DNA of 64,000 nt, taken from positions 124,001 to 188,000 of the forward strand of contig NW_027142325.1 in NCBI RefSeq assembly GCF_036365525.1, given 5' to 3'. The stretch comes from Heterodontus francisci (lineage: Eukaryota). Of the stretch, positions 14,959 through 62,473 are shown one piece after another. The first letter of the stretch is position 1, and each line of letters starts with the position of its first letter. The notes beneath the pieces are model-generated. The model was not told the DNA's origin. It saw only the letters and a list, made by a program, of their open reading frames with translations, and made no database searches. The position numbers and the translations under genes were made by a program.

Positions 14959-15019
14959 ATGAGGTTTCTCTACGTTTGGCTTTCTGCAGTCCTGCTCTCG
15001 GTCTCGGTGCGGGGTTACA
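14959..15019 (+). CDS. Putative exon 1: signal peptide MRFLYVWLSAVLLSVSVRGY
   Basis: Hydrophobic leader in one of the few non-TE stretches. Phase-1 donor A|GTAGGT at 15019/15020 is compatible with the V1 exon; G|GTTACA at 15013 is an alternative. Confidence 0.6.
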
Positions 15020-15599
15020 GTAGGTGCTTTCCAACAACTGTTCAAATTCATTTTGTTAGCCAATTGCCATTTTTATCATTTCACTACAGGGTCGCGATTG
15101 GGAGAAAGTCCAGGGGAGCGACAGTCAGAGTCAGAGAAACGGGGAGGGGTGGAGTGAGTATCAAGTTTCCAGCTGGACACAGGGATATCATAATTAACCA
15201 CTGTATGGCTCAGGGAATTAGGTGTTTTTAGAAATGATAAATGATGCCAAGGAGAAACTGCAGAAAAGACTTCCTAGAATGGTGCAAAGGATGAGGAATC
15301 AGTTAAGTGGAGTGTTACAGACAGGTGGTAAGTGGTGTGGTGGCTTCCACTTTTCACCTCTCAACTAACCGCAGTCATGTTTTGTTAAAAATGGTGCCTT
15401 AGTCCCTGAGGTTTTATTGCAGGTTAAAAATGAAGATAACGTAAAAGTTATCTCTCTGGAGAGAGAGGGGCAGAGCAGCCTGAGAAAGTCTTTTTCAGCA
15501 GAACAGCTGTGAGAATCCTTGGAATACTATACAAAACTTCACTACTCCTGTAATCAAATCCTCTTGCAATAAAGGCTAACCTAGCATTAGCCTTCTTAA

Positions 15600-17365
15600 T
15601 AAAAGCAAAATACTGCGGATGCTGGAAATCTGAAATAAAAACTAGAAATGCTGGAAATATTCAGCAGGTCTGGCAGCATCTGTGGAAAGAGAAGCAGAAT
15701 TAAGGTTTCAGGTCAGTGACCCTTCATCAGAACTGGCAGATATTAGAAATGTAAACCGTTACAAGCAAGTAAAGCGGGGGTGGGGCAAGAGACAACAAAG
15801 GAGAAGGTGTAGATAGGACAAGGTCACCAAATAGCTGACCAAAAGGTCACGGAGCAAAGATTTGTTAATGGTGCATTGAAAGACAAAGCTTTAGTACAGA
15901 AAGGGTGTTAACGGACTGAAAATTGAACAGCCACAAGTACAAACATGAAAAAAAAAGTGGGTATGCAAACTGAGAAAACTAAGATGAAATAAAATAAAAT
16001 AAACACAAAAGAATATATATTAAAAAAAATAAAAAATAAAAAAATAACTAAAAATAAAAGTAAAATGGAGGGCCCGTCATGCTCTGAAATTATTGAACTC
16101 AATGTTCAGTCCGGCAGCCTGTAGTGTGCCTATTCGGTAGATGAGATGCTGTTCCTCGAGCTTGCGTTGATGTTCACTGGAACACTGCAGCAATCCCAGG
16201 ACAGAGATGCGAGCATGAAAGCAGGGGTATGTGTTGAAATGGCAAGCAACCAGAAGCTTGGGGTCCTGCTTGTAGACTGAGCGGAGGTGTTCTGCAAAGC
16301 GGTCACCCAGTCTGCGTTTGGTCTCCACAATGTAGAGGAGACCACATTGTGAGCAGCGAATACAGTATACTACGTTGAAAGAAGTACAAGTAAATCGCTG
16401 CTTCAACTGAAAGGAGAGTTTGGGGCGTGGGATAGTGAGGAGAGAGGAGGTAAATGGGCAGGTATTACACCTCCTGCGATTGCAGGGGAAGGTGCCGTGG
16501 AAAGAGGATGAGGGGGTGAGGGTAATGGAGGAGTGGACCAGGGTGTCACGGAGGGAACGATCCCTTCGGAATGCTGATGGGGAAGGGAGGGGAAATGCGG
16601 TTGGTAGTGGCATCACGCTGAAAGTGGCGGAAATGGGGGAGGGTGATCCTTTGGATATGGAGGCTGATGGGGTGGAAAGTGAAGACAAGGGGAACCCTGT
16701 CACGGTTCTGGGAGGGAGGGGAAGGGGTGAGGGTAGAGGTGCAGGAAATGGGCCGGACACGGTTGAGGGCCCTGTTAACCACAGTGGGGGGGATTCCTCG
16801 GTTGAGGAAAAAGGTCATATCAGTAGCACCGTCATGGAAGGTAGCATCATCAGAGCAGATGCGTCGGAGACGGAGAAACTGGGAGAATAGAATGGAGTCT
16901 TTACAGGAGGCAGGGTGTGAAGAAGTGTAGTTGAGGTAGCTGTGGGAGCTGTGGGAGCCCAGCCTCCACAAGAAGCCAAGTTTGCAGTCCAATAATGTTT
17001 TAGAAATAGTTTGTGTGTCACTTCAAAATAGTCTGGAGAAAATGTCATTAAATGGAGAGTTTTAAGCATGGGTTTATAATGGATATTAGTAGACAGCCTA
17101 TCCCCAGTGATGGAGACAGAGAAGTCGAGGAAGGGAAGGGAAGTGTTGGAGATGGACCATGTAAAGGTGAGAGAAGGGTGGAAATTAGAAGCAAAGTTGA
17201 TAAAGTTTTCCAGTTCGGGGCGGGAGCAGGAAACGGCACCGATACAGTCATCAATGTACTGGAAAAAGATTTGGGGAAGGAGGCCTAAATAGGACTGGAA
17301 GAAGGAATATTCGACATATCCCATAAAAAGACAGGCATAACTAGGACCCATGCGGGTACCCATAA
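15600..17365 (-). mobile_element. Penelope-like element (Poseidon type), 5'-truncated
   Basis: RT motifs GTRMGPSYA and YIDD. GIY-YIG region VVYCIRCSQCGLLYIVETKRRLGDRFAEH. Pseudo-LTR end at 15600-15740. Confidence 0.92.
15698..15736 (-). ncRNA. Minimal hammerhead-ribozyme-like motif in the Penelope pseudo-LTR (probably degenerate)
   Basis: The minus strand reads CUGAUGA-agGGUC-acu-GACCu-GAAAC-CUUA, i.e. both catalytic boxes flanking stem II. Confidence 0.6.
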
Positions 17366-28009: not shown

Positions 28010-29350
28010 GATTACTCTCAATCATCAGTAAAGTGATGGAAGGTGTCATCAACAGTGCCATCAAGCGGCACTTGCTTAGCAATAAGCTGCTCAGTGACGC
28101 TCAGTTTGGGTTCTGCCACAGCGACTCAGCTCCTGACCTCATTACAGCCTTGGTTCAAACGTGGACAAAAGAGCTGAACTCAAGGTGTGAGGTGAGAGTG
28201 ACTGCCCTTGACATTAAGACAGCATTTGACCGAGTATGGCATCAAGGAGCCCAAGCAAAACTGAGGTCAATGGGAATCAGGGGGAAAGTCCTCTGCTGGT
28301 TGGAGTCATAACTAGCGCAAGGTAAGATGGTTGTGGTTGTTGGAGGTCAATGACCTGAGCTCCAGGACATCACTGCAGGAGTTCCTCAGGATAGTGTCCT
28401 CGGCCCAACCATCATCAGCTGCTTCATCAATGACCTTCCTTCAATCATAAGGTCAGAATTGGGGATGTTCGCTGATGATTGCACAATGTTCAGTAGCATT
28501 TGTGACTCATCAGATACTGAAGCAGTCTGTGTGGAAATGCAGCAAGACCTGGACAATATCCAGGCTTGGGCTGATAAGTGGCAAGTAACATTTGCGCCAC
28601 ACAAGTGCCAGGCAACGACCATCTCCAACAAGAGAGAATCTAACCATCTCCCCTTGACATTCAATGGCATTACCATCGTTGAATCCCCCACTATCAACAT
28701 CCTAGGGCTACCATTGACCAGAAACTGAACTGGAGTAGCCATATAAATACTGTGGCTACAAGAGCAGGTCAGAGGTAGGGAATTCTGAGGCGAGTAACTC
28801 ACCTCCTGACTCCCCAAAGCCTGTCCACAATCTACAAGGCACAAGTCAGGAGTGTGATGGGATACTCTCCACTTGTCTGGATGGGTGCAGCTCCAACAAC
28901 ACTCAAGAAGTTCGACAACAGGACAAAGCAGCCCACTTGATTGGCACCCCATCTACAAACATTCACTCCCTCCACCACCGACGCACAGTGGCAGCTGTGT
29001 GTACCATCTACAAGATGCACTGCAGCAACGCACCAAGGCTCCTTAGACAGCACCTTCCAAACCCGTGAGTTCTACCAACTAGAAGGACAAGGGCAGCAAA
29101 TGCATGGGAACACCACCACCTGCAAGTTCGCTTCCAAGTCACACACCATCCTGACTTGGAACTATGTCGCCGTTCCTTCACTGTCGTTGGGTCAAAATCC
29201 TGGAACTCCCTTCCTAACAGCACTGTGGGTGTACCTAGCCCACATGGACTGCAGCGGTTCAAGAAGGCAGCTCACCACCACCTTCTCAAGGGCAATTAGG
29301 GATGGGCAATAAATGCTGGCCTGGCCAGTGACGCCCACATCCCATGAATG
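28010..29350 (+). mobile_element. CR1-group LINE (CR1/L2/Crack-like) 3' fragment
   Basis: Motifs LDIKTAFDRVWH, GVPQ and FADD, with a 3' tail gcccacatcccatgaatgaa. A related decayed copy lies at ~44620-45390. Confidence 0.8.
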
Positions 29351-29833: not shown

Positions 29834-32800
29834 TGTGAAGTTATTCACTTTGCTGGGAAGAACAGAAATGCAGAGTATTTCTTAAATGGTGAGAGATTGG
29901 GAAGTGTTGATGTCCAAAGGGACCTGGGTGTCCTTGTTCATAAGTCACTGAAAGCTAACCTGCAGGTGCAGCAAGCAATTAGGAAGGCAAATGCTATGTT
30001 GGACTTTATTGTAAGAGGATGTGAGTAGAGGAGTAAAGGAGTCTTGCTGCAATTGTGTAGAGCCTTGGTGAGACTGCACCTGGAGTATTGTGTATAGTTT
30101 TGGTCTCCTTACCTAAGGAAGGATATACTTTCCATACAGGGAGTGTAATAGCGGTTTGCCAGACTGATCCTTGGGATGGTCGGATTGAGGAGACTGGGCC
30201 TATATTCTCTAGAATTTAGAAGAATGAGTGGTGATCTCACTGAAGCATACAAAATTCTTACAGGGCTCGACAGGGTTCTTGCAGGTAAGATGTTTCCCCT
30301 GGCTTGAGGCGTCTAGAACCAGGGGACACAGACTCAGAATAAGAGATAGGCCATTTAGGACTGAGATGAGAAGGAATTTCTTCATGCAGAGTCTGGTGTA
30401 TCTGTTGAATTCTCTACCACAGAGGGCTATTGAGGCTCAGTCATTGAGTATGTCCAAGGAAAAGACTGATAGATTTCTAGACATTAAAGATGTCAAGGGA
30501 TATGGGGATAGTGCAGGAAAAGGGTGTTGAAGTGGAAGATCAGCCATGATCAAGTTGATTAGTGGAACAGGCTCAAGGGGCTGAATGGCCGACTCCTGCT
30601 CCTAGTTCTTATGATCCTATGTTTCCAAGTTCCTATGTTCTTTCTGTATTTGTTCTTTCTCTTTGGCCTCATTTGGCTGGTTTAAGACCACTGGGGCTGC
30701 TATCACTTTACCTCCAGCCAAATCATCGCCGAGCTGCAAATCTATTCCGGCCACAGGCAGACAATGAATAATCCCTATTGTAACTGGTCCAGATACTAGT
30801 GTAGGTGGATCCAATACAAGAGCACTGACATGTATCCATCTTCAGTGCCTCTTACCAGAACCTTTGCCTTGATTGAGCTGTCTGGTGGAACGGTCATCCT
30901 TTTACCCAGCATTAAGGAGTGAGTGGCCAATGAATCTCAGAGCAGAACAATGGATTTTCCTGTCTCATTAGAGGGATATGGGACACCTTTCCCTTTCAAA
31001 CAAAATCCTGATAACCTTCAGGAATCTTTTCTACTTCTGCTACATCTGGGACAGTATTCTTTGAGGAGTGTATTACAGTGGTTTGGGTCACAGGCTTGTC
31101 TGCCTTGTTGCCTACTTGGGCTCCTTTTCCAACTCAGCTCTGTGAACTCCTACAAAATTTACTGTCTCCCCTTTAAATTCCAGCTTTCACATGCCACGTT
31201 TTACTGCAATGGAAACACACAGGTCTGTGGAAAACATTCCTGCCCTTTGCACTTTATTTCCTTACTGGTGCAGGTCTTCTTGCATTCTCACTTTTGGTTC
31301 CCTTTTCACCAGCACCCCATCTTTTATTATTATTAATCCACTTTCTGTCCTTCCCAGAACTCTTGCGATTATTATAGATGGGTTTTCCATGAAAAAGGAT
31401 TTTTGAGTAAGCACATAATCATCTGCCATTTCAGCAGCTTCTCTTACCCTTGTAATTCTTTGCTCCTCCATATGAGTCTTTATGTTGAGGGGGATGCTAT
31501 TTTTAAATCCTTCTCGTAAAATTATTTCTCTCAAATTTCCATTTGAGATTCTAACTTGAGAGATCGGATCCTGTGAACGAAAGCCATGAGTTTAATTCTT
31601 TCAAATTCAATAAAGGTTTGGGCAGGTTTTTTCCTAGCATTTCAAACCTGCGGCTGATAGGCACGTATGCATTTAAGATCGCAGTTTTAGTCTGTTCTTA
31701 ATCAGAGGAGCTTTCTTCTGATAACATGGAATGAACTTCACAAGCTCTACCCACCAATTCATCTTGTACGAGGAGGGTCCAATATTCTTTTGGCCATCCT
31801 AGTCTGTATCTATTTTTTCAAAGAAGATAAAATGGAGCTCGACCTCTTCCTTATTACATTTTGGCACAAATTGTGAGTATCTTAAAACAGCAAAGTTACT
31901 TTGCGAATTGTGGATCTAGTTTGAGTGGCTGGTTGCATTCTCACCTTGTACTTGCAGCCTTTCTAACTCAAACTTTCTCACCGCTTCCTGCCTTTCCTTT
32001 TGAAGTTGAAACTCTTCTTCCTCTTTTTCCTTTTGAAGTTGAAACCCTTTCCTCTTTTCTCAAGTGCAACTCCTCCCTCTCTTTCTGAATTCTAGCTAGG
32101 GCCCTGTTTTCAGTATCAGATCCCATGGTTGCTTCTCCTGGTTCTGGGTTAAAATTAAAATGGCTCACTAGATTCTTCAACATTTTAGGTTTCTTTGTTT
32201 TTTGTTTGAAAGTGACTCCCACCTGGGCAGCTCAGGTTGTTACGACCAGGCGAGGAAGGGATCTCAGGCTCCTCTTTCGCCTCTTCTCTGGGTTGACCAC
32301 AACAGGGTTTATCTTTTTTTAACACAGTGATTTAACTGACCACCTCAGTGAACAATTGCTCCAGTTTTCCTAATATAATTGCAAATGAACCAACAAGACA
32401 GGTATTTTTGAGTGTAAACAAGAAAGATGTAAGTTTATTAACCTTATCACTCTAAACCGGTTAATATTACTAAAATACACTGCGCCTCCATGCCCATATT
32501 CACACAAGAGCCACACACACACACACACACACAAATAAATTACAGAGGGAAAAGCAAATTTTGGGAGGTTGGAGTAGAATCCTTAATAAATGCAGTTTAA
32601 ATACTGAATCTCAGTCCCAGAGTCTTTAGTTGAAATTGTAGTCCTGAAGTCTTCGCTGGGCCATATGCACGGGTCGGGCTGGCTTCTCAGGTTCTGGAAG
32701 GCAGGAGAGGGACTTTATCCTTGTCCCCTGGTTGCTGACTGTAAGGATCTGTAAACTTGTCTTCCACCAGCGTCAGCTTGAGGCTTCTCAGGATCTGTAC

Positions 32801-33479
32801 TGGAGAGAGAGAGAGAGAGATGCTGTTCCCTAGCTAGATCCCAGTTACTGTCTGGCTTCTGAGTCACCACTCACAAATCTCCTGAGTGGGCCAAGCAGTC
32901 ATGTGATGTGACCACCTCTTTGTGTTTGAATCAGCATCTTCCGGAATGATCTTTGAAATTTTCCCCCGAGCTGTTCAGACATACTTGATAGTGGGAGGTT
33001 TGGCTCTTTCAATGTCAATGGATGTCGATGGCTTTTGACGACCCCCATTGATAAGGTTATCCCAGATAAATGAATCGGAGAGCATCCCATTGACCTGGCT
33101 CGACTGAGTAATCACATCTGTCTCCGGCCTGATTCTTTGGTGTTTTCATATGCAAATTGTGCGTGGCCAGCTTGGCTGCCAGCTGTTGCGTTTTCAAAAG
33201 TTATTTGTAACAATGTCCAGTACAAGTCTCAGGCAAAGTTCCATATGATGAAATTAATATTTCCATTTGGCATGTGGGGCTTCCGTCACACCTCTGGACC
33301 ATGCCGAATGAAATGTGACAATGGATGCATTTCATTATAGGAGTTAAAAAAAAGAGAAAACACTGGAAAACACACATGCATTTTTTCATTCACTCTCATC
33401 CACTCTGTCATCCACTCAGAAATCTTAATATTGTTGCAGCTTGTCCTTTTTTCCTCTGAAGCAGCAGTGTTGATTTCAC

Positions 33480-36400
33480 AGAATCACAGAATCGTTACAG
33501 TGCAGAAGGAGGCCATTGTCTCCGCACTGGCTCTCTGAAAGAGCAATTTCCTCAGTTCCATTCCCCTGCCTTCTCTCCATAACCTTGCACATTCTTCCTT
33601 TTCATATAACTGTCTAATTCCCTTTTGAATGCTTCAATTGAACCTGCCTCCACCACATTCTCAGGCAGTGCATTCCAGACCTTAACCACTTGCTGCAGGA
33701 AAAAGTTTTTCCTCATGTCACTTTTGCTTCTCTTACCAAATACTTTAAATCTGTGCCTTCTCATTCTCAATCCTTTCATGAGTGGGAACAGTTTTTCTCT
33801 AGCTACTCTTTCCAGACCCTTCATGATTATGAATACCTCTATCAAATCACCTCTCAGCCTTCTCTTCTCCAAGGAAAACAGTCCTAACTTCTCCAATCTA
33901 TCTTCATAACTGAAATTCCTCATCCCTGGAACCATTCTGGTGAATCTTTTCTGTACTCTCTCCAATGCCCTCACATCTTTCCTCAAGTGCGGTGCCCAGA
34001 ATTCAACGCAATACTCCAGCTGAGGACAATCTAGTGTCTTATACAAGTTCAACAAAACTTCCTTGCTCTTGTACTCTATGCCCTTATTAATAAAGCCCCA
34101 GACTCTCAACCTGCCACCTTCAATGACTTATGCACGTATATACCTAGGTCCCTCTGCTCTTGCACCCCCTTTAGAATTGTACCCTTTATTCTATATTGCC
34201 TCTCCATGTTCTTCCTACCAAAATGAATCACTTCACATTTCTCAGCATTGAACTTCATCTGCCACCTGTCTTCCCCTGCCACCAACTTGTCTATGTCCTT
34301 TTGTAGTTCTACACTATCCTCCTCACAGTTCACAATGTTTTGTATCATCTGCAAACTTTGAAATTGTGCCCTGTACACCAAGGTCTAGGTCATTAATATA
34401 CATCAGGAAAAGCAAGGGTCCCAACACTGATCCCTGGGGAACTCCACTACAAACATTCCTGCAGTCCGAAAAACATCCATTAACCACTGCTCTTTGTTTC
34501 CTGTTACTCAGCCAATTCCGTATCCATGTTGTTACTGTCCTGCTTATTCCATGAGCTACAGGTTTGTTCACAAGTCTGTTATGTGGCACTGTATCAAACG
34601 CATTTTGAAAGTCCATGTACACTACATCAACAGCATTGCCCTCATCAACCCTCTCTGTTACCTCCTCAAAAAACTCGAGCAAATTAGTTAAACATGATTT
34701 TCCATTAAGAAATCCATGCTGGTTTTCCTTAATTAACTCGTATTTGTCCATGTGACTATTGATTTTGTCCCAAATTATTTTTCCTAGAAGTTTTCCCACC
34801 GCTGAAGTCAAACTGGCTGGCCTGTAGTTGCTGGGCTTATCTTTACACCCTTTTTTGAACAAGGGAGTAATGTTTGCAATTCTCCAGACCTCTGGCACCA
34901 CTCTCGAGTATAAGGAAGACTGAAAAATTATGGCCAGTGCCTCTGCGATTTCCACTGTCACTTCCCTCAATATCCTTGGATGCATCTCATCTGGTCCTGG
35001 TGCTTTATCCTCTTTAAGTACAGACAGCCTATCTAATACTTCCTCATTGTCAATTTTAAACCCTCTAGTATCTGACTTGCCTCCTCTTTCAACAATGCTT
35101 AGGTTGCATCTTCTTCCTTGGTAATGACAGATACAAATTTAATACCTCAGCTATGCCCTTTAACTCCATGTGTAAATCCCCTTTCTGGTCCCTAATAGTC
35201 CCCACTCCTCCTTTTACCACCCTTTTACTATTTATATTCCTATAGAAAACTTTGGGATTCCCTTTAATGCTAGTTGCCAGTCTCTTTTCATGCTCTCTCT
35301 TTGCTTCTCTTATTTGATTTTTCACTTCCCCTCTGGACATTTTATATTTAGCCTGGTTCTCAATAGTATTTTCTACCTGGCATCTGTCACAAGCACACTT
35401 TTTCTTCTTTATATTAATCTTTACCTCTTTTGTCATCCAGGGAGCTCTGGATTTGTTTGCCCTACTTTTCCCCATTGTCATCGACCGGTTTTCCTCCCAG
35501 CTTTTAACTCTAATTTATTCGCCCAACTCCATTCTTCTCCCATTGAAGTTGATTATTCTTACTCTGGATTGCTGTTTGTCCTTTTCCATAGTCAGCCTAA
35601 ACCTTATGATCCAATGATCACTATCCCCTAAATGCTCTCCTACTGATACTTGATCCAATCGGCCCACCTCATTCCCAAGAACCAGGTCTAGCAGTGCCTC
35701 CTTTCTTGTTGGACTAGCAACATACTGTTGTAAAACATTTTCGTGAACACACTCTAGGAACTCTTGCCCGTCACTGACCTTTACACTCCTATTATCCCAG
35801 TCTATGTTTGGATAATTAAAGACCCCCATTATAACTACCCGATAATTTTTGCAGCTCACTGGAATTTTCTTGCAAATTTGTTCCTCCACGTCCTTCCCAC
35901 TAGCTGGTGGCCTGTAGATAACACTGAGCAATGTAACTGTATCTTTTTTCTTCCTTAGCTCTAGCCAAATTGATTTTGTCCTCGACCCCTCTGGGACATC
36001 CTTTTTCTCCAGCACTGCAACAGTTTCCTTCAACAATACCGCCACTCCTCCCCCTTTTTCCCTTTCTTACCTTTCCTGAACACCTTGTATCCAGGAATAT
36101 TCAACACCCAGTCCAGCCCTTCTTTGAGCCTGGTCTCTGTTCAAGCCTCAACATCACATTTCCACAAGGCAATCTGCACCTGTACCTCACTGGTCTTATT
36201 ACCCACAGTCCATGCATTCACATACATGCACATTAACCCTGATTCAGACTTTATTACTTTCTCCCTTACGCTGACCCCACCTAATAATTTACTATTCCCG
36301 ACTCCGAGTCGTGGATAGTGATGAGGATTGTCAGAGGATACAGCAGGATAGAGATCGGTTGGAGACTTGGGCGGAGAAATGGCAGATGGAGTTTAATCCG

Positions 36401-39550: not shown

Positions 39551-39725
39551 NNNNNNNNNNNNNNNNNNNNNNNNNNNNNNNNNNNNNNNNNNNNNNNNNN
39601 NNNNNNNNNNNNNNNNNNNNNNNNNNNNNNNNNNNNNNNNNNNNNNNNNNNNNNNNNNNNNNNNNNNNNNNNNNNNNNNNNNNNNNNNNNNNNNNNNNNN
39701 NNNNNNNNNNNNNNNNNNNNNNNNN
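39551..39725. other. Assembly gap (N run) at a (CA)n microsatellite within an LTR
   Basis: The sister LTR has (CA)n at the equivalent position (32513-32533). Confidence 0.95.
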
Positions 39726-41047
39726 AAGCAGAGTTGGGAGGTTGGAATCGAGTCCTTTATAAATGGAATGTAAATACTGAGTCTCAGTCCCAGAGTTTTT
39801 AGTTGAAATTGCAGTCCTGAAGATCTCGCTGGGCCATGTGCACGGGTCAGGCTGGTTACTCAGGTTCTGGAAGGCAGGAGAGAGACTTTATCCTTGTCCC
39901 CCGGTTGCTGACTGTAAGGATCTGTAGACTTGTCTTCCACCAGACGCAGATTGAGGCTTCTCAGGATCTCTACTAGAGAGAGAGAGAGAGACAGAGATGC
40001 TGTTCCCTTGCTGGATCCCAGTGACTGTCTGACTTCTGAGTCACCAATCACAAATCTCTTGAGTGGGCCAAGCAGTCATGTGATGTGACCACCACTTTAT
40101 GTCTGAATCAGCATCTTCCGGAATGATCTTTGAAATTCAGGGCTCTCCTCCTAGCTGTTCAGACATACTTGGCAGGGGAGATTTGACTCTTTCAATGTCA
40201 ATGGGTGTCGATGGCTTTTGATGACCCCTCATTGATAAGGTCATCCCAGATAAGTGAATCAGAGAGCACCCCATTGTTCTGACTAGGCTGAGTAATCATA
40301 TCTGTCTCCAGACTGATTCTTTGGTATTTCATATGCAAATTGTGCTTGGCCATCTGGGCTGCTAGCTGTTCAGTTTTTAAAAGTTATTTGTAACAATGTC
40401 CAGTACAAGTCTCAGGCCAAGTTCCATGCGATAAAACTAATATTTCCATTTGGCATGTGGGATTTCCATCACAGGGTTTTCAAATCTTCAATACTTAATC
40501 AATTTAACTTATCATATGACATGTCTCCCTGCTCTTCTGCATGAAATGCGTCCTTTTGTTTCTCGCACCCGAGAAAAGAAATGAATGATATGAGAAAACC
40601 TGTTTGTTCAATTTTCACAGTTTTAGAGATCCATTTTCCTCCCATTTCCAAATATTTTATTTAAGCAGTTCAGAATCCCAGCTTTGAGCCCCCATTTTGG
40701 TATGGACAGGTGGTAACTTGTGTGGGTGGCTTCCAATTTTCACCTCCCAACTGATTGCGATTGTGTTTTCTTAAAAATGGTGCATTTTTAGGGCCAAATA
40801 AACTGACAAACGATAGTTTTCTTGTAGGTTAAAAAAACACCTATTTTCTTTGGAACAATTCCTGAAATGGTCGCAACCTTCACCCACTCGCACATTCACA
40901 CATACACAAGAATAGATAGAGAGAAAAAGGTCGGATGCATTTAAAGTCCAAGGTAATATAAAACTTTGTGGATTACAGAATGCTGTTGAATCATCTGGGG
41001 AGAAAAGTCTTCTTTTAAAGGTACAGGCCTGGTTGTCTGCTTGCTCT

Positions 41048-45690: not shown

Positions 45691-45704
45691 TGAACCCATC
45701 AACT

Positions 45705-45890
45705 ATAAACCATCTGAACCCCTCTGTTATATTCCAGCCTGTAACTCACTGTTATTTATCCATTATTTAATGTACAAACTACCCAAACCCCTCTGTTATA
45801 TTCCAGCCTGTAACTCACTGTTATTTATCCATTATTCTATGTATAAACTACCCAAACCCCTCTGTTATATTCTAGCCTGTAACTCACTCG
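45705..45890. repeat. 69-bp tandem repeat, about 3 copies
   Basis: aacccctctgttatattccagcctgtaactcact recurs at 45717, 45786 and 45855. Confidence 0.9.
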
Positions 45891-46050
45891 TGTCTGATGT
45901 CTGTGTATAAACCATCCCAATCTGACCATATGATGTTATATCTGCTGTCACTAGATCACAATCAGTATATTGTCTCACAGTTTGATTTTGAAACAGTATT
46001 CTCTGTCCCTGTGCTGTTTTAACATTCTCGCTCTCTCTCTCTCTCCACAG

Positions 46051-46434
46051 AGGTTTCTGCTAATGGTTGGACAATGAGCACTGCGGATGATGTGAGTGTT
46101 GAGGAAGGAGGGTCCGCTGTCTTGCCGTGTACTTTCACCCACCCACACCCTGATCAGACGGTCACCGGCTCTGTGATATAGTACAAAGGCCGTTACAATG
46201 TTATTTTTAAGTGTACATATTCTGGTCCGGGCCATTCACAGAGTGAGCTGTGTGAGAATGTGATACAGCAGGACGGCGGGAATCGATTCAGATTCGTGGG
46301 GAACTTCAATAACAAAGATGTCTCAATAATGATGGAGCGGCTGATCCGGGCGGACAGCGGTCCTTATCAGTGTCGTGTGGAGCTCAATATTGGAAATATT
46401 AATGTACTGAAACTAACGAGTCTGAGAGTGGAAG
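46051..46434 (+). CDS. siglec15-like: Exon 2: Siglec-15-like Ig V-set domain with sialic-acid-binding Arg; premature TAG at 46179-46181
   Basis: Acceptor (ct)n ccacag| and donor G|GTGAGG. Reads VSANGWTMSTADDVSVEEGGSAVLPCTFTHPHPDQTVTGSVI*YKGRYNVIFKCTYSGPGHSQSELCENVIQQDGGNRFRFVGNFNNKDVSIMMERLIRADSGPYQCRVELNIGNINVLKLTSLRVE. Shares AVLPCTFTHPH, FxC...SELC, RFRxxGN and YxCRVE with Siglec-15. Confidence 0.9.
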
Positions 46435-47746
46435 GTGAGGAACAATGTTCAGGGGCTGCAGCTGCCCCGATAGCTCAATGGCTAAAGACTCCACCTGGTC
46501 TGGTCCTGAACCACATGGGTAAATAAACTCTCAGCAATCCCGGGCTTTGAAAGGGGAATATTGCCCGGGATTCCTGCTCCTGATCACTCTCCAGACACTC
46601 CTGCTGGAAGGTGTCTTATTGGACATTGAATAAGACAATGGGCCAGCATGTGATGCTCTCCACAGTCAAATAGTCCATTGCCACTCATTGACCAGGCTTG
46701 TGCTGTAAGGAAGGCCATCTGGGTGAGATCAGTAATAATATTTTAGGATAATGAGCTATTTCAGTTTGGACATTGGGTAAGTGCAGCATGTCCATCTCAG
46801 TCTCAGTGCTGTAGGCCTGCAGTGTCCAGCTCAAAGCTGATTGGACCTGTTCCACCACTTCATATATTCTCAGTGGAGAATTGGCGGGTGGATCACAGGG
46901 AGACGATGTCAATTGGGTCATTGCTGCTCAGCTCACACTTCAGGGCAGTACCGAGGGAGTGCTGCACTGGCTGAGGTGCCATTAGCCGCACCTTAACCTT
47001 CCCCCGATGTTGCCCCTCAAATCGATTGAATCTTCTGGGCATTTCTGGGACCAATGGGAAATGATATTTAACCGAGACAAATGCAGTGTGATGCGGGTAG
47101 GTAGGATCAACACGGAATTCACTGAACATTTACAGGGAATAATACAGAAAGTGGCTGAGAGAGAAAAGGATCGAGACTGTTAATGTACACACATCACTCA
47201 AAATTCACAACCAATGCAGTGAAGCCATTGACAAAACAAACAGGGCATTGGGTTGTATTAACAAAACCATTCAGTACAAGTCAAACCACTTCCCACTTTC
47301 TGCTAGTCTGAGAAACGTCCCTGACCTCTTACCCTCTGTTTCCTGTTTTGTCACCATCTTTCAATCTGTTCTGCTACCCGGCCCCCTGAGCCCACAATCC
47401 CTGGGATCTCCACTGGCTGAGTACTACACTGGGCAATGCCTCTACCTACTGGACCACAGGGAGAGCTCAGAACTGAAATAAATTAAAGTTCTCATCAAGA
47501 CCTGGATTTTGCTGCCTCACTGTGTGGTGGAGGGAGGTTCAATTGAAACATTTAAAAGGGAATTAGATTGAAATAAAGGAAGAATGTGCAGGGTTTTGGG
47601 GAGAAGGCGGGGGGAATAGCAGGAAGTGAATTGCTCTTTCGGTGAGCCGGTGCAGACATGTTGGGCTGAATGGTCTCCTTCTGCAGTGTAGCAATTCTGT
47701 GATCTGTGAAGACACTGATCCATTCTAATGTCTGTCCTTTCCTCAG

Positions 47747-48097
47747 CTGCTAGTGGAAATGTCTCAGTGGTGACTGGGACCGAGGGAGCTTCAGTTACAT
47801 TGCCCTGTATGTTCACACCCAGGAGTTACCGCACCCTGTCCACTGTTACATGGATGAAGAAGGAGCCCTACCAACACATAGTCACATTCAGAGCCCAATC
47901 AAATGGATCTTGGACAACTGCAAATGGTGGAAATCGGTACGAGCTCATCGGGAATCCACAGGAGGGAAACGCCTCAACCAGGATAAACCAGCTGAGTGTG
48001 AATGACAATCACACTTACCTGTGTCTAGTGGAATACACATCATTGGACAATTATCAATATCTGATCCAGACTGAGACACAGCTGCTGGTTGTACATG
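47747..48097 (+). CDS. Exon 3: second Ig V-set domain (no essential Arg)
   Basis: Acceptor tcctttcctcag| and donor G|GTAAGA. Motifs GASVTLPC...VTW...RYELIGNPQEGNASTRINQLSVNDNHTYLCLVEY. Open frame with N-glycosylation sequons NVS, NGS, NAS and NHT. Confidence 0.9.
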
Positions 48098-48169
48098 GTA
48101 AGAAACCATTCCCACATTCTCCAGTGTATCGAGGTTGTACAAGAGGGTGAGCAGTGTAATATAAAACAC

Positions 48170-48480
48170 TCATCAGCTGTGGCTCAGTGGTTATCACTCT
48201 CACCTCTGAGTCAGTCGGTTGTGGGTTCAAGACACTCCAATGCAATACTGATGGAATGTGACACTGTTTAAGGTACTGTGTATGAGAAGAGATATTAAAG
48301 TAAGGCCTTATCTGGAAGAGTATGGGAGTTGACCTAATGTCCTGGTCAATATTTATCTCTGAACCAACATCATCAAACCATAGTCTGATAATTATCTCAT
48401 TGCTGTTTATGGGATCTTGCTGTGTGCAAATTATCTGCTGTGTATCCTGCATTAAAACAGTGACTACACTTCAAAAACAA
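48170..48480 (+). mobile_element. Old SINE (SacSINE1/DeuSINE-like)
   Basis: tRNA-like head gtggctcagtgg...ggttcaag and Deu-like core gtcctggtcaatatttat...cattgctgtttatgggatcttgctgtg. Confidence 0.65.
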
Positions 48481-49194: not shown

Positions 49195-51882
49195 AGGAAG
49201 GATGAATGAGAATGGACAGAGACTGCTTGAGTTGTGTACCTATCATAACCTCTGCATCACCAACTTGTTCTTTCACACTAAACCCTGTCACCAGGTTTCT
49301 TGGAGGCACCCAAGATCACGTCGTTGGCACCAGCTGGACCTCATCGTCACAAGGCGAGCCTCTCTAAACAGCGTTCAAATCACACGCAGCTTCCACAGTG
49401 CGGACTGCGACACCGACCACTCCCTGGTGTGCAGCAAAGTTAGACTCAAACCAAAAAAGCTGCATCACTCCAAGCAGTAGGGCCGCCCGCGCATCAACAC
49501 GAGCAGAATTTCTTATCCACAGCTGTTACATAAGTTTCTAAATTCACTTGAAAAAGCCCTTCAAAACACTCCCTCAGGGGATGCAGAGACCAAGTGGGCC
49601 CACATCAGAGACACCATCTATGACTCAGCAATGACCACCTATGGCAAACGTGTGAAGCAGAATGCAGACTGGTTTCAATCTCACTTTGAAGAGCTGGAAC
49701 CTGTCATAGCCGCTAAGTGCATTGCACTGCTGAACGACAAGAAAGCCCCCAGCGAGTTAACATCCGTAGCACTTAAAGCAGCCAGAAGCACTGCACAAAG
49801 AACAGTCAGGCGCTGCACAAATGACTACTGGCAACACCTATGCAGTCATATTCAGCTGGCCTCTGACACCGGAAACATCAGAGGAATGTTTGATGGCATT
49901 AAGAGAGCTTTTGGGCCAACCATCAAGAAGATCGCCCCCCCTCAAATCTAAATCAGGGGACACAATCACTGACCAAGGCAAGCAAATGGACCGCTGGGTT
50001 GAGCACTACCGAGAGCTGTACTCCAGGGAAAATGTTGTCACTGAGACCATCCTCAATGCAGCCCAGTCTCTGCCAGTCATGGATGAGCTGGATGTACAGC
50101 CATCAAAATCGGAACTCAGTGATGCCATTGATCCTTTAGCCAACGGAAAAGCCCCTGGGAAGGACGGCATTACCCCTGAAATAATCAAGAGTGCCAAGAC
50201 TGCTATACTTTCAGCACTGTACAAACTGCTTTGCCTGTGCTGGGATGAGGGAGCAGTACCACATGACATGCGCGATGCCAATATCATCAACCTCTGTAAG
50301 AACAAAGGTGACCGCGGTGAATGCAACAACTACTGTGAAATCTCCCTGCTCAGCATAGTGGGTAAAGTCTTCGCTCGAGTTGCTTTAAACAGGCTCCAGA
50401 AGCTGGCTGAGCGTGTCTACCCTGAGGCACAGTGTGGTTTTCGAGCAGAGAGATCCACCACTGACATGCTGTTCTCCCTTCGTCAGATACAGGAGAAATG
50501 CCGTGAACAACAGATGCCCCTCTACGTTGCTGTCATTGATCTCACCAAAGCCTTTGACCTCATCAGCAGACGTGGTCTCTTCAGACTACTAGAAAAGATC
50601 GGATGTCCACCAAAGCTACTAAATATCATCACCTCATTCCATGACAATATGAAAGGCACAATTCAGCATAGCGGCGCCTCATCAGACCCCTTTCCTATCC
50701 TGAGTGGCGTGAAACAGGGCTGTGTTCTCGCACCCACACTGTTTGAGATCTTCTTCTCCCTGCTGCTCTCTCATGTGTTCAAGTCTTCAGAAGAAGGAAT
50801 TTTCCTCCACGCAAGATCAGATGGCAGGTTGTTCAACCTTGCCCGTCTAAGAGCGAAGACCAAAGTACAGAAAGTCCTCATCAGGGAACTCCTCTTTGCT
50901 GACGATGCTGCTTTAACATCTCACACGGAAGAGTGCCTGCAGAGTTTCATTGACAGGTTTGCGGCTGCCTGCAATGAATTTGGCCTAACCATCAGCCTCA
51001 AGAAAACGAACATCATGGGACAGGACGTCAGAAATGCTCCATCCATCAATATCAGTGACCATGCTCTGGAAGTGGTTCAAGAGTTCACCTAGCTGGGCTC
51101 AACTATCACCAGTAACCTGTCTCTGGATGCAGAAATCAACAAGCGCATGGGAAAGGCTTCCACTGCTATGTCCAGACTGGCCAAGAGAGTGTGGGAAAAT
51201 GGCGCACTGACACGGAACACAAAAGTCCGAGTGTATCAAGCCTGTATCCTCAGTACCTTGCTCTACAGCAGCGAGGCCTGGACAAAGTATGTCAGCCAAG
51301 AGCGACGTCTCAATTCATTCCATCTTCACTGCCTCCGGAGAATCCTTGGCATCAGGTGGCAGGACCGTATCTCCAACACAGAAGTGTTCGAGGCGGCCAA
51401 CATCCCCAGCTTGTACACACTACTGAGTCAGCGGTACTTGAGATGGCTTGGCCATGTGAGCCGCATGGAAGATGGCAGGATCCCAAAGGACACATTGTAC
51501 AGCGAGCTCGTCACTGGTATCAGACCCACCAGCTGTCCATGTCTCCGCTTTAAAGACGTCTGCAAACGCGACATGACGTCCTGTGACATTATTCACAAGT
51601 CGTGGGAGTCAGTTGCCAGTGATCGCCAGAGCTGGCGGGCAGCCATAAAGGCGGGGTAAAGCGTGGCGAGTCGAAGATACTGAGCAGTTGGCCGGAAAAA
51701 GAACAGAAGCGCAAGGGGAGAGCCAACTGTGTAACAGCCCTGACAACCAATTTTATCTGCAGCGCCTGTGGAAGAGTCTGTCACTCTAGAATTGGCCTTT
51801 ATAGCCACTCCAGGCGCTGCTCCACAAACCACTGACCACCTCCAGGCGCTTACCCATTGTCTCTCGAGACAAGTAGGCCAAA
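49195..51882 (+). mobile_element. RTE-clade LINE (BovB-like), 5'-truncated
   Basis: Motifs NENGQRLLELC, DTDH, KAPGKDGI, QCGFRAERST, DLTKAFD, GVKQGC and FADD, plus a C-terminal C2H2-like motif. Several stops. Confidence 0.93.
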
Positions 51883-53219
51883 GAGTGGGGGGAAGAGATC
51901 ATGTGAGAGGAGATGTGGTAAATCAAATGAAAACGATAAGGTAATCGAGCAGAGTGGCGAATTAAGTAGTGATAACCAGAGTGCGGCAAGCTTAAGAGTG
52001 TACCAGCAGAGAAGACCAGAGATGGCAGAAATGGTATAAAGAGAGAGTTAAAGGCGCTGTATCTGAATGCACACAGCATTCGTAATGAACAGTTGCTACA
52101 CTGTATGACAGAGTATACAGGAAGAAATAAATGGGGCCTGTAAGAAAGGTACTGCAATCACATGGGTGATTTTAATCTATATAGATTGGACGAATCAGAT
52201 TGGCAAATGTTGCTTGAAAAATGAGTTCACAGAGTGTATTTCGGACAATTTCACAGAGCAGTACGTTCTGGAACCAACTAGGGAGCATGCTATTCTAGAC
52301 CTGGTAATGTGCAATCAGACAGGATTGGTCATTAACCTCATGGTAAAGGAGCCTCTAGGTGACAGTGATTATAACATGAGAGAATTTCACATTCAGTTTG
52401 AAGGGGAGATGTGTGGGCCTAAGACTAGTGTTTAAACCTAAATAAAGGTAAATACAAGAGTATGCCAGCAAAAAATATAAAATCAGACTGTAAAAGCTTC
52501 TACAGGTACGTAAAAAGGAAAAAGACAAATGTGGGTCCATTACAGGCAGAGTAAGGACAATTTATAATGGGAATAGAGAAATGGCAGAGAAGCTAAATAA
52601 TTATTTTGTGTCTGTCTTCCCTGAGGAAGATATAAGAAATTTCCCAGAATTAGAGATCCAAGGGGTTAGGGGGAATGAGGAATTGAAGGAAATTAGTATT
52701 AGTAAGAAGATTGTATTGGAGAAATTAATGGGGCTGAAGGTTGTTAAGTCCCCGGGACCTGATATTCTACATCCCAGAGTGTTTAAAAAGGTAGCTATGG
52801 AGATAGTGGATGCATTGGTGATCATCTTCCAAAATTCTATAGATTCTGGAGCAATTCCTGCAGATTGGAAGGTTGCAAATGTCATCCCACTATTTAAGAA
52901 GGGAGGGAGAGAAAACAGGGAATTACAGACCTGTTAGCCTTACATCGGTCATTGGGAAAATGCTAGAATCTATTCTAAAGGATGTGATAAATGGACACTT
53001 GGATAATAATGATCTGATTGGGCATAGTCAACATGGATTTATGAATGGGAAATCATGTTTGATGAACCTGTTGAAGTTTTTTGAGGATGTTACTAACAGA
53101 ATTGATAAAGCAGAGTGGTATACCTGGATTTTCAGAAGGCTTTTGATAAAGTCCCCCACAGGAGGTTGTTTAGCAAAATTAAAGCACATGGGATAGGAGG
53201 TAATCTACTGGCATGGATT

Positions 53220-54388
53220 TCTTTCTTTTTCTTTTTCTTTTGGGCCTCCTTATCTCGAGAGCCAATGGATACGCGCCTGGAGGTGGTCAGTGGTTTGTGA
53301 AGCAGCGCCTGGAGTGGCTATAAAGGCCAATTCTGGAGTGACAGGCTCTTCCACAGGTGCTGCAGAGAAATTTGTTTGTTGGGGCTGTTGCACAGTTGGC
53401 TCTCCCCTTGCGCCTCTGTCTTTTTTCCTGCCAACTACTAAGTCTCTTCGACTCGCCACAATTTAGCCCTGTCTTTATGGCTGCCCGCCAGCTCTGGCGA
53501 ATGCTGGCAACTGACTCCCACGACTTGTGATCAATGTCACACGATTTCATGTCGCGTTTGCAGACGTCTTTATAACGGAGACATGGACGGCCGGTGGGTC
53601 TGATACCAGTGGCGAGCTCGCTGTACAATGTGTCTTTGGGGATCCTGCCATCTTTCATGCGGCTCACATGGCCAAGCCATCTCAAGCGCCGCTGACTCAG
53701 TAGTGTGTATAAGCTGGGGGTGTTGGCCGCTTCAAGGACTTCTGTGTTGGAGATATAGTCCTGCCACCTGATGCCAAGTATTCTCCGAAGGCAGCGAAGA
53801 TGGAATGAATTGAGACGTCGCTCTTGTCTGGCATACGTTGTCCAGGCCTCGCTGCCGTAGAGCAAGGTACTGAGGACACAGGCCTGATACACTCGGACTT
53901 TTGTGTTCCGTGTCAGTGCGCCATTTTCCCACACTCTCTTGGCCAGTCTGGACATAGCAGTGGAAGCCTTACCCATGCGCTTGTTGATTTCTGCATCTAG
54001 AGACAGGTTACTGGTGATAGTTGAGCCTAGGTAGGTGAACTCTTGAACCACTTCCAGAGCGTGGTCGCCAATATTGATGGATGGAGCATTTCTGACATCC
54101 TGCCCCATGATGTTCGTTTTCTTGAGGCTGATGGTTAGGCCAAATTCATTGCAGGCAGACGCAAACCTGTCGATGAGACTCTGCAGGCATTCTTCAGTGT
54201 GAGATGTTAAAGCAGCATCGTCAGCAAAGAGGAGTTCTCTGATGAGGACTTTCCGTACTTTGGACTTGGCTCTTAGACGGGCAAGGTTGAACAACCTGCC
54301 CCCTGATCTTGTGTGGAGGAAAATTCCTTCTTCAGAGGATTTGAACGCATGTGAAAGCAGCAGGGAGAAGAAAATCCCAAAAAGTGTG
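53220..54388 (-). mobile_element. RTE-clade LINE, 5'-truncated second copy with open reading frame
   Basis: 335-aa ORF with FADD and CSTCGRACHSRIGLYSH; (AAAG/AAAAAG)n tail at 53220-53240. Confidence 0.93.
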
Positions 54389-58194: not shown

Positions 58195-58223
58195 CAGTCC
58201 TTATCCTGAGACTGTGCCCCTGT

Positions 58224-60261: not shown

Positions 60262-60361
60262 CTGCAGAGACTTTCCCCATTGCGATATTGTGCATTCCAC
60301 TTGGAGTGAAACTCCTCGCCCTTATAGTGATGTGGATTATTTTGTTGAGGGATAAATCCAG
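60262..60361 (+). CDS. Exon 4: transmembrane segment with central lysine
   Basis: Polypyrimidine acceptor tttctgttcag| and donor AG|GTATGT. Reads AAETFPIAILCIPLGVKLLALIVMWIILLRDKSR. The Lys codon at 60309-60311 lies in an LGxKxL context like that of Siglec-15. Confidence 0.85.
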
Positions 60362-60999: not shown

Positions 61000-61117
61000 G
61001 TTTTTGGTCACCTGTCCTCATATCTCCTCATGTGACTCGGTGTTCCATTTTGCCTGATTGTGTTCCTGTGAAGCACATGTTAAAAGTGCTATATAAATGC
61101 AAGTTTTTGTTCTTGCT
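61000..61117 (+). mobile_element. L2-type 3' end
   Basis: tttggtcacctgtcct...gtgctatataaatgcaagtt tail. Confidence 0.6.
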
Positions 61118-61320
61118 ATATAAACAAAGTGACTCCTGACATCGCAGCGGTCTGCTGACATAATCAGAGCGCTCCAAGCTGTGAACATGTGCAAACGGTC
61201 GCCTGCGCTGAGATGCTGCACATACTCAGCCTACGTCTTGCCAGGACTAACTGGTGCATGCGAAGGAAAACATTCTCCCCCCTCGCCCACTCACTCCCCA
61301 CTCCTCGCTTCCAGCCACCC

Positions 61321-61812
61321 TGCTCTCCAGCTGCTCACTCCCCTCTTCCGCCCACCATCCTGCTCTCCAGCTGCTCACTCCCCTCTTCCGCCCACCATCC
61401 TGCTCTCCAGCTGCTCACTCCCCTCTTCCGCCCACCATCCTGCTCTCCAGCTGCTCACTCCCCTCTTCCGCCCACCATCCTGCTCTCCAGCTGCTCACTC
61501 CCCTCTTCCGCCCACCATCCTGCTCTCCAGCTGCTCACTCCCCTCTTCCGCCCACCATCCTGCTCTCCGGCCGCTCACACCTCGCTTTCGTCCTCCCCCA
61601 TCCTGCTCTCCGGCTTCTCAGTCCCCTCTTCCTCCCACCATCCCACTCTCCGGCCGCTCGGGGAGTGAGCAGCCGGAGAGCAGGATGGTGGGGGGGGGAA
61701 GTGGGGAGTGTGCAGCCGGAGAGTGGGATGGGGGGGGGGAAGCGGGGAGTGAGCGGCCGGAGAGCAGGATGGGGGGTGAAGCGGGAAGTGAGTGAGTGGA
61801 CAGCGGGATGGC
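61321..61812. repeat. 40-bp minisatellite with an inverted arm
   Basis: Six identical copies of tgctctccagctgctcactcccctcttccgcccaccatcc (61321-61560), diverged copies to ~61658, then reverse-complement copies to ~61812. Confidence 0.95.
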
Positions 61813-62457
61813 ACTGAAACCTCACTGAATTACGGAGGGTGTGCAGCACTGTCAGAGGTGCTGTCCTTCTGAGAAAGTTTAAACAGTGCAACGTTCTCCG
61901 AGTATCAACCAAAACATGTCCATTGTCTGCTGTCATGTTTGCTTATGAAATGACAGTCACTGCTCCTAAAGTAATTCACTTTAGGTGAATTAAGATGACT
62001 AGCTACTAAATAACTGGCGCATGCGCAGGAGGGAGGGGAGACTGTTGGGGGTGGGATGGCGGTGGCAGCATGACAATATTTGAGTGGATCTTTGGGTTGA
62101 AGTTGTTTATCTGTGATAAACAGATAAACCATCATTAATCCTGGCAGCTGCCTGAACGTCGCAGACACTGATGTTACAGTGGAACAGGCTGCATTTTCGC
62201 ATGTGCTAGTACTGCGCCACCTGATGGTTGCGTTGTCAGCAAACGTCGCCCTTTATAAATGCAAGTTGTTGTTCTTGCTGAAAACAGGAACAACAATCAG
62301 ACCCATTGTGTCAGTGTTTAACACTGATAATCTAATCTGTTTTTAAATACATGGGGAATCCTATGTAAACAGCTGCAGGTTGTATATGGCGGTTCTGAAA
62401 ATGCTCTTATTTTACTGTTAATATGGCTCATTTTATTTAATCTTGTTTTGTCCCCAG

Positions 62458-62473
62458 AAAGGAGCAGGACTGA
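62458..62473 (+). CDS. Putative terminal exon: short cytoplasmic tail (R)KEQD*
   Basis: Strong acceptor tcttgttttgtccccag|. A phase-2 join gives TGA at 62471-62473. AATAAA lies downstream at 62754-62759. Confidence 0.5.

Follow-up and report, generated by a model that had tools for sequence, protein, structure and literature searches.

Siglec-15 is a single gene in mammals and is treated as a lone, conserved activating receptor. In the paired receptor families (Siglec-5/14, KIR, LILR/PIR and SIRP), near-identical ectodomains are carried either on a charged transmembrane (TM) span with a short tail or on tails with immunoreceptor tyrosine-based inhibitory motifs (ITIMs), and blocks of sequence are exchanged between the genes. 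The locus described here bears on both of these systems. It is located in a window of 64,000 nt from the horn shark, Heterodontus francisci (NCBI RefSeq assembly GCF_036365525.1, contig NW_027142325.1, positions 124,001–188,000 of the forward strand); all positions below are those of the window. The locus is probably one activating-type member of an elasmobranch multigene family that descended from the Siglec-15 lineage, and this assessment takes in the predicted protein, the TGG/TAG reading of a codon in its first V domain and the transcript reading.

Human Siglec-15 (Q6ZMC9; structure 7ZOZ) provides the residues used for comparison. It has the disulfides C64–C142 and C95–C104 and, on strand F, R143 (PMC10264397), an essential Arg that forms a salt bridge to sialic acid (PMC10264397, PMC7226832). 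The G-strand residues Y154 and E155 contact sialic acid (PMC10264397). Siglec-15 is listed among the highly conserved Siglecs (PMC7226832) and is described as a cancer-immunotherapy and bone target (PMC10264397). There is no mention of sharks in the available portion of the fish Siglec paper PMC7226832. Among the papers listed in a literature search there was no account of a shark or ray Siglec-15-like family, although the whale shark gene-family supplement of PMC8455134, which includes Siglecs, may list it; among those listed for DAP12 there was nothing on shark adaptors.

Structure of the locus

Five phase-compatible exons on the + strand, which had been proposed in the initial annotation of the sequence, were confirmed by reading each exon. 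They were searched one by one.

14959–15019, + strand: exon 1 (E1), start codon and signal peptide MRFLYVWLSAVLLSVSVRGY; phase-1 donor GTAGGT, with one base left over
46051–46434, + strand: exon 2 (V1), Siglec-15-type V-set domain; phase 1 at both ends
47747–48097, + strand: exon 3 (V2), intact V-set domain; phase 1 at both ends
60262–60361, + strand: exon 4, stalk and TM span AETFPIAILCIPLGVKLLALIVMWIILLRDKS; phase-2 donor
62458–62473, + strand: exon 5, coding part of the tail, (R)KEQD followed by TGA at 62471–62473

E1 has an in-frame ATG upstream, at 14869, which is the start used by P0187, a RefSeq model of 333 aa from the horn shark that is named 'Siglec-15'. Residues 1–50 of P0187 correspond to 14869–15018 with 100% identity in tblastn, and residues 1–19 of P0183, P0198 and P0236 match at 89%. 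No signal exon nearer to V1 was found in the window, either by blastn of the E1 region or by short-query tblastn with eight family signal peptides; only 14959–15018 matched. The splice from E1 to V1 is a prediction from these matches and from the exon phases.

The translation of V1 is VSANGWTMSTADDVSVEEGGSAVLPCTFTHPHPDQTVTGSVI-stop-YKGRYNVIFKCTYSGPGHSQSELCENV...GPYQCRVELNIGNINVLKLTSLRVE. It has the motifs LPCTFTHPH, FKC...SELC and YQCR, with Cys codons in LPC, FKC, SELC and YQC, and the Arg of strand F is encoded by CGT at 46374–46376. There is an in-frame TAG at 46179–46181, at the position of a Trp (W94) that is invariant in the alignment of the family (12 of 12 members). Pfam assigns both immunoglobulin (Ig) exons to the V-set, with E values of 5.2e-16 for V2 and 1.4e-06 for the part of V1 after the stop, and the claim that the second domain is another V-set therefore stands. 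V2 has a Leu (YLCLVEY) at the place of the V1 Arg.

Exon 4 encodes a Lys in the center of the TM span (codon 60309–60311), in the context IPLGVKLLAL, and its translation matches the TM exon of P0187 at 34 of 34 residues (100%, tblastn). The predicted tail, ...RDKS-RKEQD-stop, is nine residues long and has no Tyr, in agreement with the earlier view that it lacks ITIMs and immunoreceptor tyrosine-based activation motifs (ITAMs). Two acceptor AGs are found 4 nt apart in the region 62456–62519 and provide two tails. An exon start at 62458 produces the short tail RKEQD-stop, identical to that of P0187; a start at 62462 produces a 19-residue tail, RSRTDPSQEAEKLNVQTAI-stop, which ends at 62519 and is the same as the tail of P0183. 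The long tail frame is also the C-terminus of the TM-less Heptranchias model P0004 (84% over 19 residues by tblastn), and because of this a secreted form could arise through skipping of the TM exon.

No C2 exon or C2 remnant is detectable in the window by tblastn with the C2-plus-tail segments of nine Siglec-15-type proteins at E values up to 50, which upholds the initial annotation in its view that intron 3 has no C2 exon. The best match (E 0.23) is the TM exon itself, and the best match inside intron 3 (E 0.24 over 23 residues) is at chance level.

Relationship to Siglec-15

In searches of the PDB with single exons, Siglec-15 (7zoz) is the best match for V1 (1.2e-05) and for V2 (2.3e-09), with TIM and pIgR close behind. 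When a profile of 12 activating family members is used, 7zoz is first, with an E value of 3.1e-21 and 76.7 bits on V1 alone. The next single-V matches are below 50 bits, CD33 has an E value of 1.5e-08, and pIgR reaches about 63 bits summed over several domains. The profile also shows a weak second stretch, in which the family TM span is aligned to the TM span of Siglec-15 around the Lys. V1 of P0187, the closest intact paralogue, was used as query as well, and 25 matches were obtained from 111 candidates. Of these, 24 are elasmobranch proteins and the other is pig P0244 (1.4e-12), which is Siglec-15 (3.8e-173 to 7zoz).

The alignments extend to the residues that characterize Siglec-15. Strand F is 'yqCRVEl' in the window and 'yfCRVEf' in 7zoz, with the Arg and the SELC Cys aligned. 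FKC and SELC align with FRC and SELC of 7zoz, both Cys are invariant in the family (12 of 12 members), and V1 is predicted from these residues to have the extra C'–C'' disulfide. The TM Lys is in an LG-x-K context in the window (IPLGVKLLAL), as it is in gull (FVPLGIKVLIL), lungfish (SALGIKLLLF) and pig (ALGLKALLL) and also in coelacanth Siglec-15. The LPCTFTHPH motif, the extra Cys pair, the YQCR Arg and the central TM Lys had all been noted in the initial annotation; each is present, and the sequence of V1 is Siglec-15-like.

An AlphaFold model of P0187, obtained from a 12-row alignment and with a mean pLDDT of 74.7, predicts two beta-sandwich domains and a TM helix. A fold search was made with the whole model only. 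The best PDB match is JAML, the others are two-V-domain proteins and single-chain variable fragments, and the search did not separate Siglec-15 from other V families.

A family of activating and inhibitory receptors in sharks and rays

A search with the ray member P0011 gave 90 matches, all 90 of them from sharks, rays or skates, and both members with a TM Lys and members with an ITIM tail are among them. The proposal of a lineage-specific receptor family is in keeping with this, as the family is seen only in sharks, rays and skates within the searches.

Horn shark members are of both types. P0183 and P0187 are activating forms with a TM Lys and a short tail; P0192, P0198 and P0214 are inhibitory forms with an uncharged TM span and VxYAAV-type tail motifs, and these represent the ITIM-bearing partners that the initial annotation had suggested as worth seeking. 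That annotation regarded the receptor as hidden, which does not hold, as RefSeq already models many horn shark members, some under the name Siglec-15, and includes a near-twin of the locus (P0001, below). V1 of the window differs from the horn shark paralogues at 10–18 of 126 residues (11 of 119 for the partial model P0214), and V2 differs at 3–10 of 116; the V2 domain of the inhibitory paralogue P0192 is identical at 113 of 116. Comparison of the window with P0183, P0187, P0192 and P0198 by tblastn gives 81–89% for V1 and 84–92% for V2. The differences (46053–46433; 47749–48096) are found in cassette-like blocks that are shuffled between activating and inhibitory genes, i.e., KG---RY or NRDSWD; NIGNINVLK, TVGKFQTQK or NIGNVQTPK; SY or ER; SLD or LRS. 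At the sequence level, this shuffling looks like gene conversion. The variable blocks of V1 are in the C'–C'' region and in strand G, which form the ligand face of Siglec-15.

The V2 exon alone was searched against 1.84 billion representatives. There are 309 matches with E<=0.001, and 24 of these have E<=1e-30. The best match is P0001 (XP_067884631.1), an 'uncharacterized protein' of Heterodontus francisci encoded on an unplaced record of 534,573 bp. This model has an internal Met start in V1; the 3' end of its V1 is identical to that of the window (35 of 35 residues), and its V2 is identical at 112 of 116. After V2 it continues with GFLEAPKITS..., followed by 82 C-terminal residues identical to window positions 52187–52432. 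By these identities P0001 is evidently a model of a twin of the window locus, i.e., the other haplotype or a recent duplicate, with the same LINE (long interspersed nuclear element) exons.

P0187 has a different pattern of identity. Its first 50 residues match E1 at 50 of 50 (14869–15018, including 30 residues upstream of the signal peptide), its TM span matches at 34 of 34 and its RKEQD tail is that of the window. The V exons that belong to P0187 itself are not found elsewhere in the window by tblastn. Either P0187 is encoded by a nearby duplicate whose flanking exons are identical, or by another haplotype, or E1 is shared or misassigned.

A tree of 51 V domains (129 columns, midpoint root) was used to place the family; it contains no named non-Siglec outgroup and cannot alone place V1 inside or outside the Siglecs. 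Three groups are present. The family V1 domains form one group (13 rows, 99/99). A second group (19 rows, 99/95) contains the family V2 domains, the second V domains of the proteins from Callorhinchus and Heptranchias, and some models from rays and the whale shark that have a single V. The third (19 rows, 91/86) consists of the canonical Siglec-15 V domains and the first V of the two chondrichthyan V-V-C2 proteins. V1 and V2 of the window nest among horn shark members (100/99 and 95/81, respectively). When family V1 is constrained to form a clade with the first V domains of the V-V-C2 proteins from chondrichthyans, a grouping that was chosen after the tree was seen, the cost is 0.98 log-likelihood units (p-AU 0.42).

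The canonical V-C2 form of Siglec-15 is found in gull, frog and coelacanth and in the great white and basking sharks. V-V-C2 proteins are found in Callorhinchus (with a TM Lys), Heptranchias (with an ITIM tail), lungfish and a characin, and a V-V protein is found in gar. Because family V1 forms its own clade and lamniform sharks have a separate V-C2 protein in the canonical clade, the family is, as judged from the domain sequences, a paralogue lineage and not the Siglec-15 orthologue. The initial suggestion of a Siglec-15-related receptor is thus retained as kinship by sequence and not as orthology. The V-V layout would be old and the C2 domain lost, because family V2 matches the second V of the chimaera and sevengill shark V-V-C2 proteins. 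The pattern is most simply read as loss of the C2 exon, in elasmobranchs, from a chondrichthyan Siglec-15-like gene of V-V-C2 layout, followed by expansion of the gene into activating and inhibitory copies, with V1 evolving fast. The V-V architecture, originally described as unusual to this gene, is the rule in the family; V-V-C2 proteins occur in chimaera, sevengill shark, lungfish and characin, and the loss of C2 appears to be derived.

The two V domains of 'Siglec-15/12-like' proteins from lungfish, gar, characin and salamander (P0027, P0054, P0143, P0070 and P0083) pair by species. Tandem V duplications therefore took place separately, and several times, in this lineage outside the cartilaginous fish.

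Transcripts and the in-frame stop codon

Contigs of four runs (X1, X5, X6 and X7), all from one animal, were placed on positions 45900–48400 at 97% likeness. X1 is flat over introns and exons (DNA-like), and X5, X6 and X7 have high depth on the two V exons and little or none in intron 2 (RNA-like); these labels of the runs are guesses by the tool. The V1–V2 joint, placed at 46434 to 47747 by a +2 shift of the tool, skips 1312 nt between GT..AG ends and is present in one contig each of X5, X6 and X7. It is not present in the contigs of the DNA-like X1. Two further junctions are found at contig ends of X5. Behind 48097 there are 19 letters of 60262–60280, which represent the V2–TM junction, and behind 48099 there are 27 letters that match 49297–49323 exactly and represent a junction of V2 with a LINE; both stretches are unique in the window. 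Two features of intron 3 are related to the LINE junction.

49295–49323, + strand: alternative exon start in a sense-oriented LINE of intron 3; acceptor AG at 49293–49294; reads G-FLEAPKITS as in P0001
52187–52432, + strand: repeat-derived open reading frame (ORF) in intron 3 that is the C-terminus of the RefSeq model P0001 (residues 195–276, 100% by tblastn); no Pfam family matched

Transcripts come from the locus or from a near-identical twin. V2 is joined to the TM exon in some of them and to the exonised LINE of intron 3 in others. The LINE-spliced product would be truncated, without a membrane anchor.

The in-frame TAG of V1 depends on position 46180, where all covering contigs read G (TGG) and none reads A. 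The depth of G is 4.36 of 4.36 in X1, 251.1 of 251.1 in X5, 37.2 of 37.2 in X6 and 4.49 of 4.49 in X7. X1 and X7 each have a contig centred on 46180 that carries the YKGRYNV sequence of the locus. The X7 piece (46150–46222) differs from the window solely at 46180 and includes YKGRYNVIFKC, which is common to only this locus and P0187; P0187 would differ from the piece again at the Thr/Ile codon 46215–46217. When V1 of the window is compared with six horn shark paralogues, there are only two private residues, the stop (46180) and an Asn (46309; codon 46308–46310), and the DNA-like run reads G at both positions, which restores the family residues. As TGG is what the reads of the species have in this local context, the TAG most likely represents a polymorphic allele or a base or assembly error, and not the mark of a fixed pseudogene. 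We infer the allelic status from these contigs. The initial annotation had taken the codon to be in need of 'repair' to Trp; TGG is present in every contig that covers the site.

Intron 1, the assembly gap and intronic repeats

The introns had been described as filled with transposable elements, and this agrees with Pfam: 4 of 10 longer ORFs tested match RVT_1. One assembly gap is present in intron 1. These features, which are outside the predicted coding exons, are as follows.

28354–28725: reverse-transcriptase ORF (Pfam RVT_1)
34323–34982, − strand: reverse-transcriptase ORF (Pfam RVT_1)
39551–39725, no strand: assembly gap (N) in intron 1, inside a copy of an intronic repeat; no reading frame is touched
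49821–51089, + strand: LINE reverse-transcriptase ORF in intron 3 (Pfam RVT_1, 3e-30)
53287–54291, − strand: reverse-transcriptase ORF (Pfam RVT_1)

The repeat of intron 1 has two copies (32238–33290 and 39277–40473) of about 1.05–1.2 kb that are 7 kb apart and 81–94% identical. The left flank of the gap (39277–39550) aligns to 32238–32510 with an offset of 7036–7040, and the right flank (39734–40473) aligns to 32561–33290 with an offset of 7173–7183, in the same order and orientation as the left flank. In the intact copy (32238–33290) approximately 50 nt separate the two aligned parts. As the gap flanks are collinear within one repeat copy, a large hidden block of exons in the gap is unlikely. 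No family exons were found next to the gap by tblastn with family proteins or by the signal-peptide search of the window. A placement of the V exons of P0187 inside the gap was also considered and was set aside; the flanks are in register with the other copy, and there is room for approximately 50 nt.

Two tandem repeats are present near exons. At 45704–45910, some 140 nt before the V1 acceptor, a 69-nt unit occurs three times in tandem; the other copies are 90% and 71% identical to the first copy. Positions 61159–61665 in intron 4 form a stop-free frame with a repeated Pro- and Ser-rich unit of about 39 residues (...CSPAAHSPLPPTILLSSCSLPSSAHHPALQLLTPLFRPPS...), which is probably a tandem repeat and not coding sequence.

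Alternative explanations

The reading of the locus as an activating member of a Siglec-15-derived family has to be weighed against three others. In the one that questions descent, the locus encodes a generic IgV receptor (pIgR-, TIM-, JAML- or CD300-like), its likeness to Siglec-15 is superficial and the RefSeq label 'Siglec-15' is an automatic best-hit name. This is very improbable, although TIM-1 and pIgR score near Siglec-15 with single exons, the whole-model fold search ranks JAML first (3.6e-16), and the RefSeq names of family members include pIgR-like, JAML-like, HAVCR1-like and sialoadhesin-like. Further points that weigh against a Siglec-15 type of receptor are the position of family V1 outside the canonical Siglec-15 V clade in the domain tree, the replacement of the Arg in 5 of the 11 family members aligned at its position, and the G strand, where Y154 and E155 (PMC10264397) are without counterpart in the window copy (NIGNINVLK). 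Some paralogues keep K-F-Q/E-T at strand G. On the other side, the family profile has Siglec-15 first by more than 25 bits over the best other single V, with only the summed pIgR score nearer, and in the V1-alone search with P0187 pig Siglec-15 was the only match that belongs to a named family. Siglec-15 and the family have in common the LPCTFTHP motif, the pair of extra Cys, the Arg and the PLG-x-K of the TM span. The V-V-C2 intermediates of chimaera and sevengill shark tie family V2 to proteins with a first V in the Siglec-15 clade, and the data do not reject a tree in which family V1 is joined to these first domains (p-AU 0.42).

The other two explanations concern the integrity of the gene rather than its ancestry, and here too several findings weigh against the reading of a single working receptor gene. 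Exon joining in transcripts, which the initial annotation had proposed for all five exons, is seen for V1–V2 and V2–TM in RNA-like contigs placed on 45900–48400; the E1–V1 and TM–tail junctions are predicted. Intron 1 is long (31 kb), V1 and V2 of P0187 differ from the window at 11 of 126 and 10 of 116 residues, and E1 may serve, or be copied from, another gene. If the five exons are not one gene, E1 belongs to the gene of P0187, and the V1-V2-TM-tail block (46–62.5 kb) is a 5'-truncated duplicate or has another, unrecognised first exon. The identity of E1 over 50 of 50 residues with P0187, a protein whose V exons the window lacks, is in favor of such a split, as is the position of E1 31 kb upstream of V1 across an assembly gap. 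Yet a split gene is rather improbable, as E1 is the sole signal-exon match in the window and its phase fits V1, with the junction codon AAG (Lys) producing ...RGY-K-VSANGW exactly as in P0187. P0187 also has the rare V1 variants of the window, VSANGW and YKG---RYNV, and the collinear flanks of the gap make a large missing exon block not likely. A dead copy, in which the TAG is real and fixed in a decaying member of a birth-and-death cluster and a near-identical twin or paralogues are the source of the intact reads and transcripts, is unlikely. It would account for the assembly TAG at an invariant Trp, for introns swollen by LINEs and for the part of the transcripts that ends in LINE-derived exons. 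The RefSeq model of the twin, P0001, starts at an internal Met downstream of the site of the stop, as though its V1 were damaged as well, and no database protein among the matches equals the window V2 (best 113 of 116 in P0192 and 112 of 116 in P0001). The G contigs of X1 and X7 are one each, with depth below 5 and a warning of possible error from the tool; those of X5 and X6 come from a paralogue transcript, as the contig ends 7 letters on and diverges after 46186. All four runs are from one animal, contigs drop minor variants, so that absence of an A allele is not demonstrable from them, and the near-twin locus (P0001) could be the source of the 'locus-specific' contigs. Decay is opposed by the V1 residues themselves, all of which except the stop and one Ser-to-Asn change are shared with an intact paralogue, and by the intact state of V2, the TM exon, the tail and all splice sites. 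No contig in the four runs carries A, and the X1 and X7 contigs with G span 46150–46222 with the locus's own indel variant and no other difference.

Proposed function and significance

A function of the activating member may be proposed by analogy with Siglec-15 (PMC7226832, PMC10264397). V1 would bind a sialylated or related ligand through its Arg, and the TM Lys would recruit an ITAM adaptor of the DAP12/DAP10 type. Sister genes with almost the same ectodomain but with an uncharged span and ITIM tails would give the opposing signal.

The shark and ray family would be of interest as a lectin receptor that was turned into a paired-receptor system: the sugar-binding type of V domain and the membrane Lys were kept, a second V was added, the C2 was dropped and the genes were split into activating and inhibitory forms. 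The family also supplies natural variants of the binding face. An intronic LINE is spliced into transcripts of the window copy or of its near-identical twin. The single locus adds little beyond the other copies of the family in the horn shark genome; what is new here are the reads that point to a non-fixed stop, the exonisation of the LINE, the collinear flanks of the gap and the question of E1 and P0187. The TAG in the assembly should not count as proof of a pseudogene.

It is possible, although somewhat doubtful, that the reference horn shark is heterozygous, with a null (TAG) and a working (TGG) allele of an activating receptor in a cluster of cassette-swapping paired receptors derived from Siglec-15. 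If this is true, activating members would be polymorphic in whether they function at all, as in mammalian KIR/Ly49, and such a system would have arisen independently in cartilaginous fish, out of a lectin receptor lineage with a single activating gene in mammals. The early Siglec-15 lineage would then have been V-V-C2 in chondrichthyans, with C2 lost in elasmobranchs.

Comparison with known systems

Siglec-15 of tetrapods and bony fishes (human Q6ZMC9, 7ZOZ; pig P0244, gull P0121 and frog P0136) is similar to the window locus in its N-terminal V-set, which has LPCTFTHP, the canonical disulfide, the extra C'–C'' disulfide and the F-strand Arg. It is also similar in the TM Lys within the LG-x-K context and in the short tail without an ITIM. 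The window locus differs in that a second V-set is in place of the C2-set of Siglec-15 and there is no C2 at all. Its family is multigene and has inhibitory sisters, whereas PMC7226832, in its available portion, treats Siglec15 only as an activating receptor. The window copy is without the G-strand residues of sugar contact, and its V1 is outside the canonical clade.

The V-V-C2 proteins of Callorhinchus milii (P0034, TM Lys) and Heptranchias perlo (P0031, ITIM tail) have two V domains in the same order, and the second V groups with family V2 (99/95). Activating and inhibitory forms both exist there, as they do in the family. In Heptranchias, one chromosome-sized record carries both the V-V-C2 gene and a V-V member of the family. 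Unlike the family, these proteins keep C2, and their first V is in the canonical clade, whereas family V1 has a long branch of its own (the data do not reject a joint clade).

The lamniform V-C2 'Siglec-15' proteins (Carcharodon P0135 and Cetorhinus P0263) are elasmobranch proteins with a Siglec-15-type V that has YFCRVE. They differ from the window locus in their single V plus C2, in a TM span without Lys and in a longer tail with Tyr. These sequences indicate that sharks have a separate gene that is nearer to a Siglec-15 orthologue.

JAML (3MJ6) is a two-V receptor and is the best structural match of the whole predicted model to a tandem V-V arrangement. The likeness appears to be one of architecture only, as the identity is only 18%, TMq is 0.33 and there are no Siglec motifs. 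The paired receptor families resemble the window family in the exchange of cassettes between activating and inhibitory genes and differ from it in lineage and in the V-V ectodomain of the shark and ray receptors.

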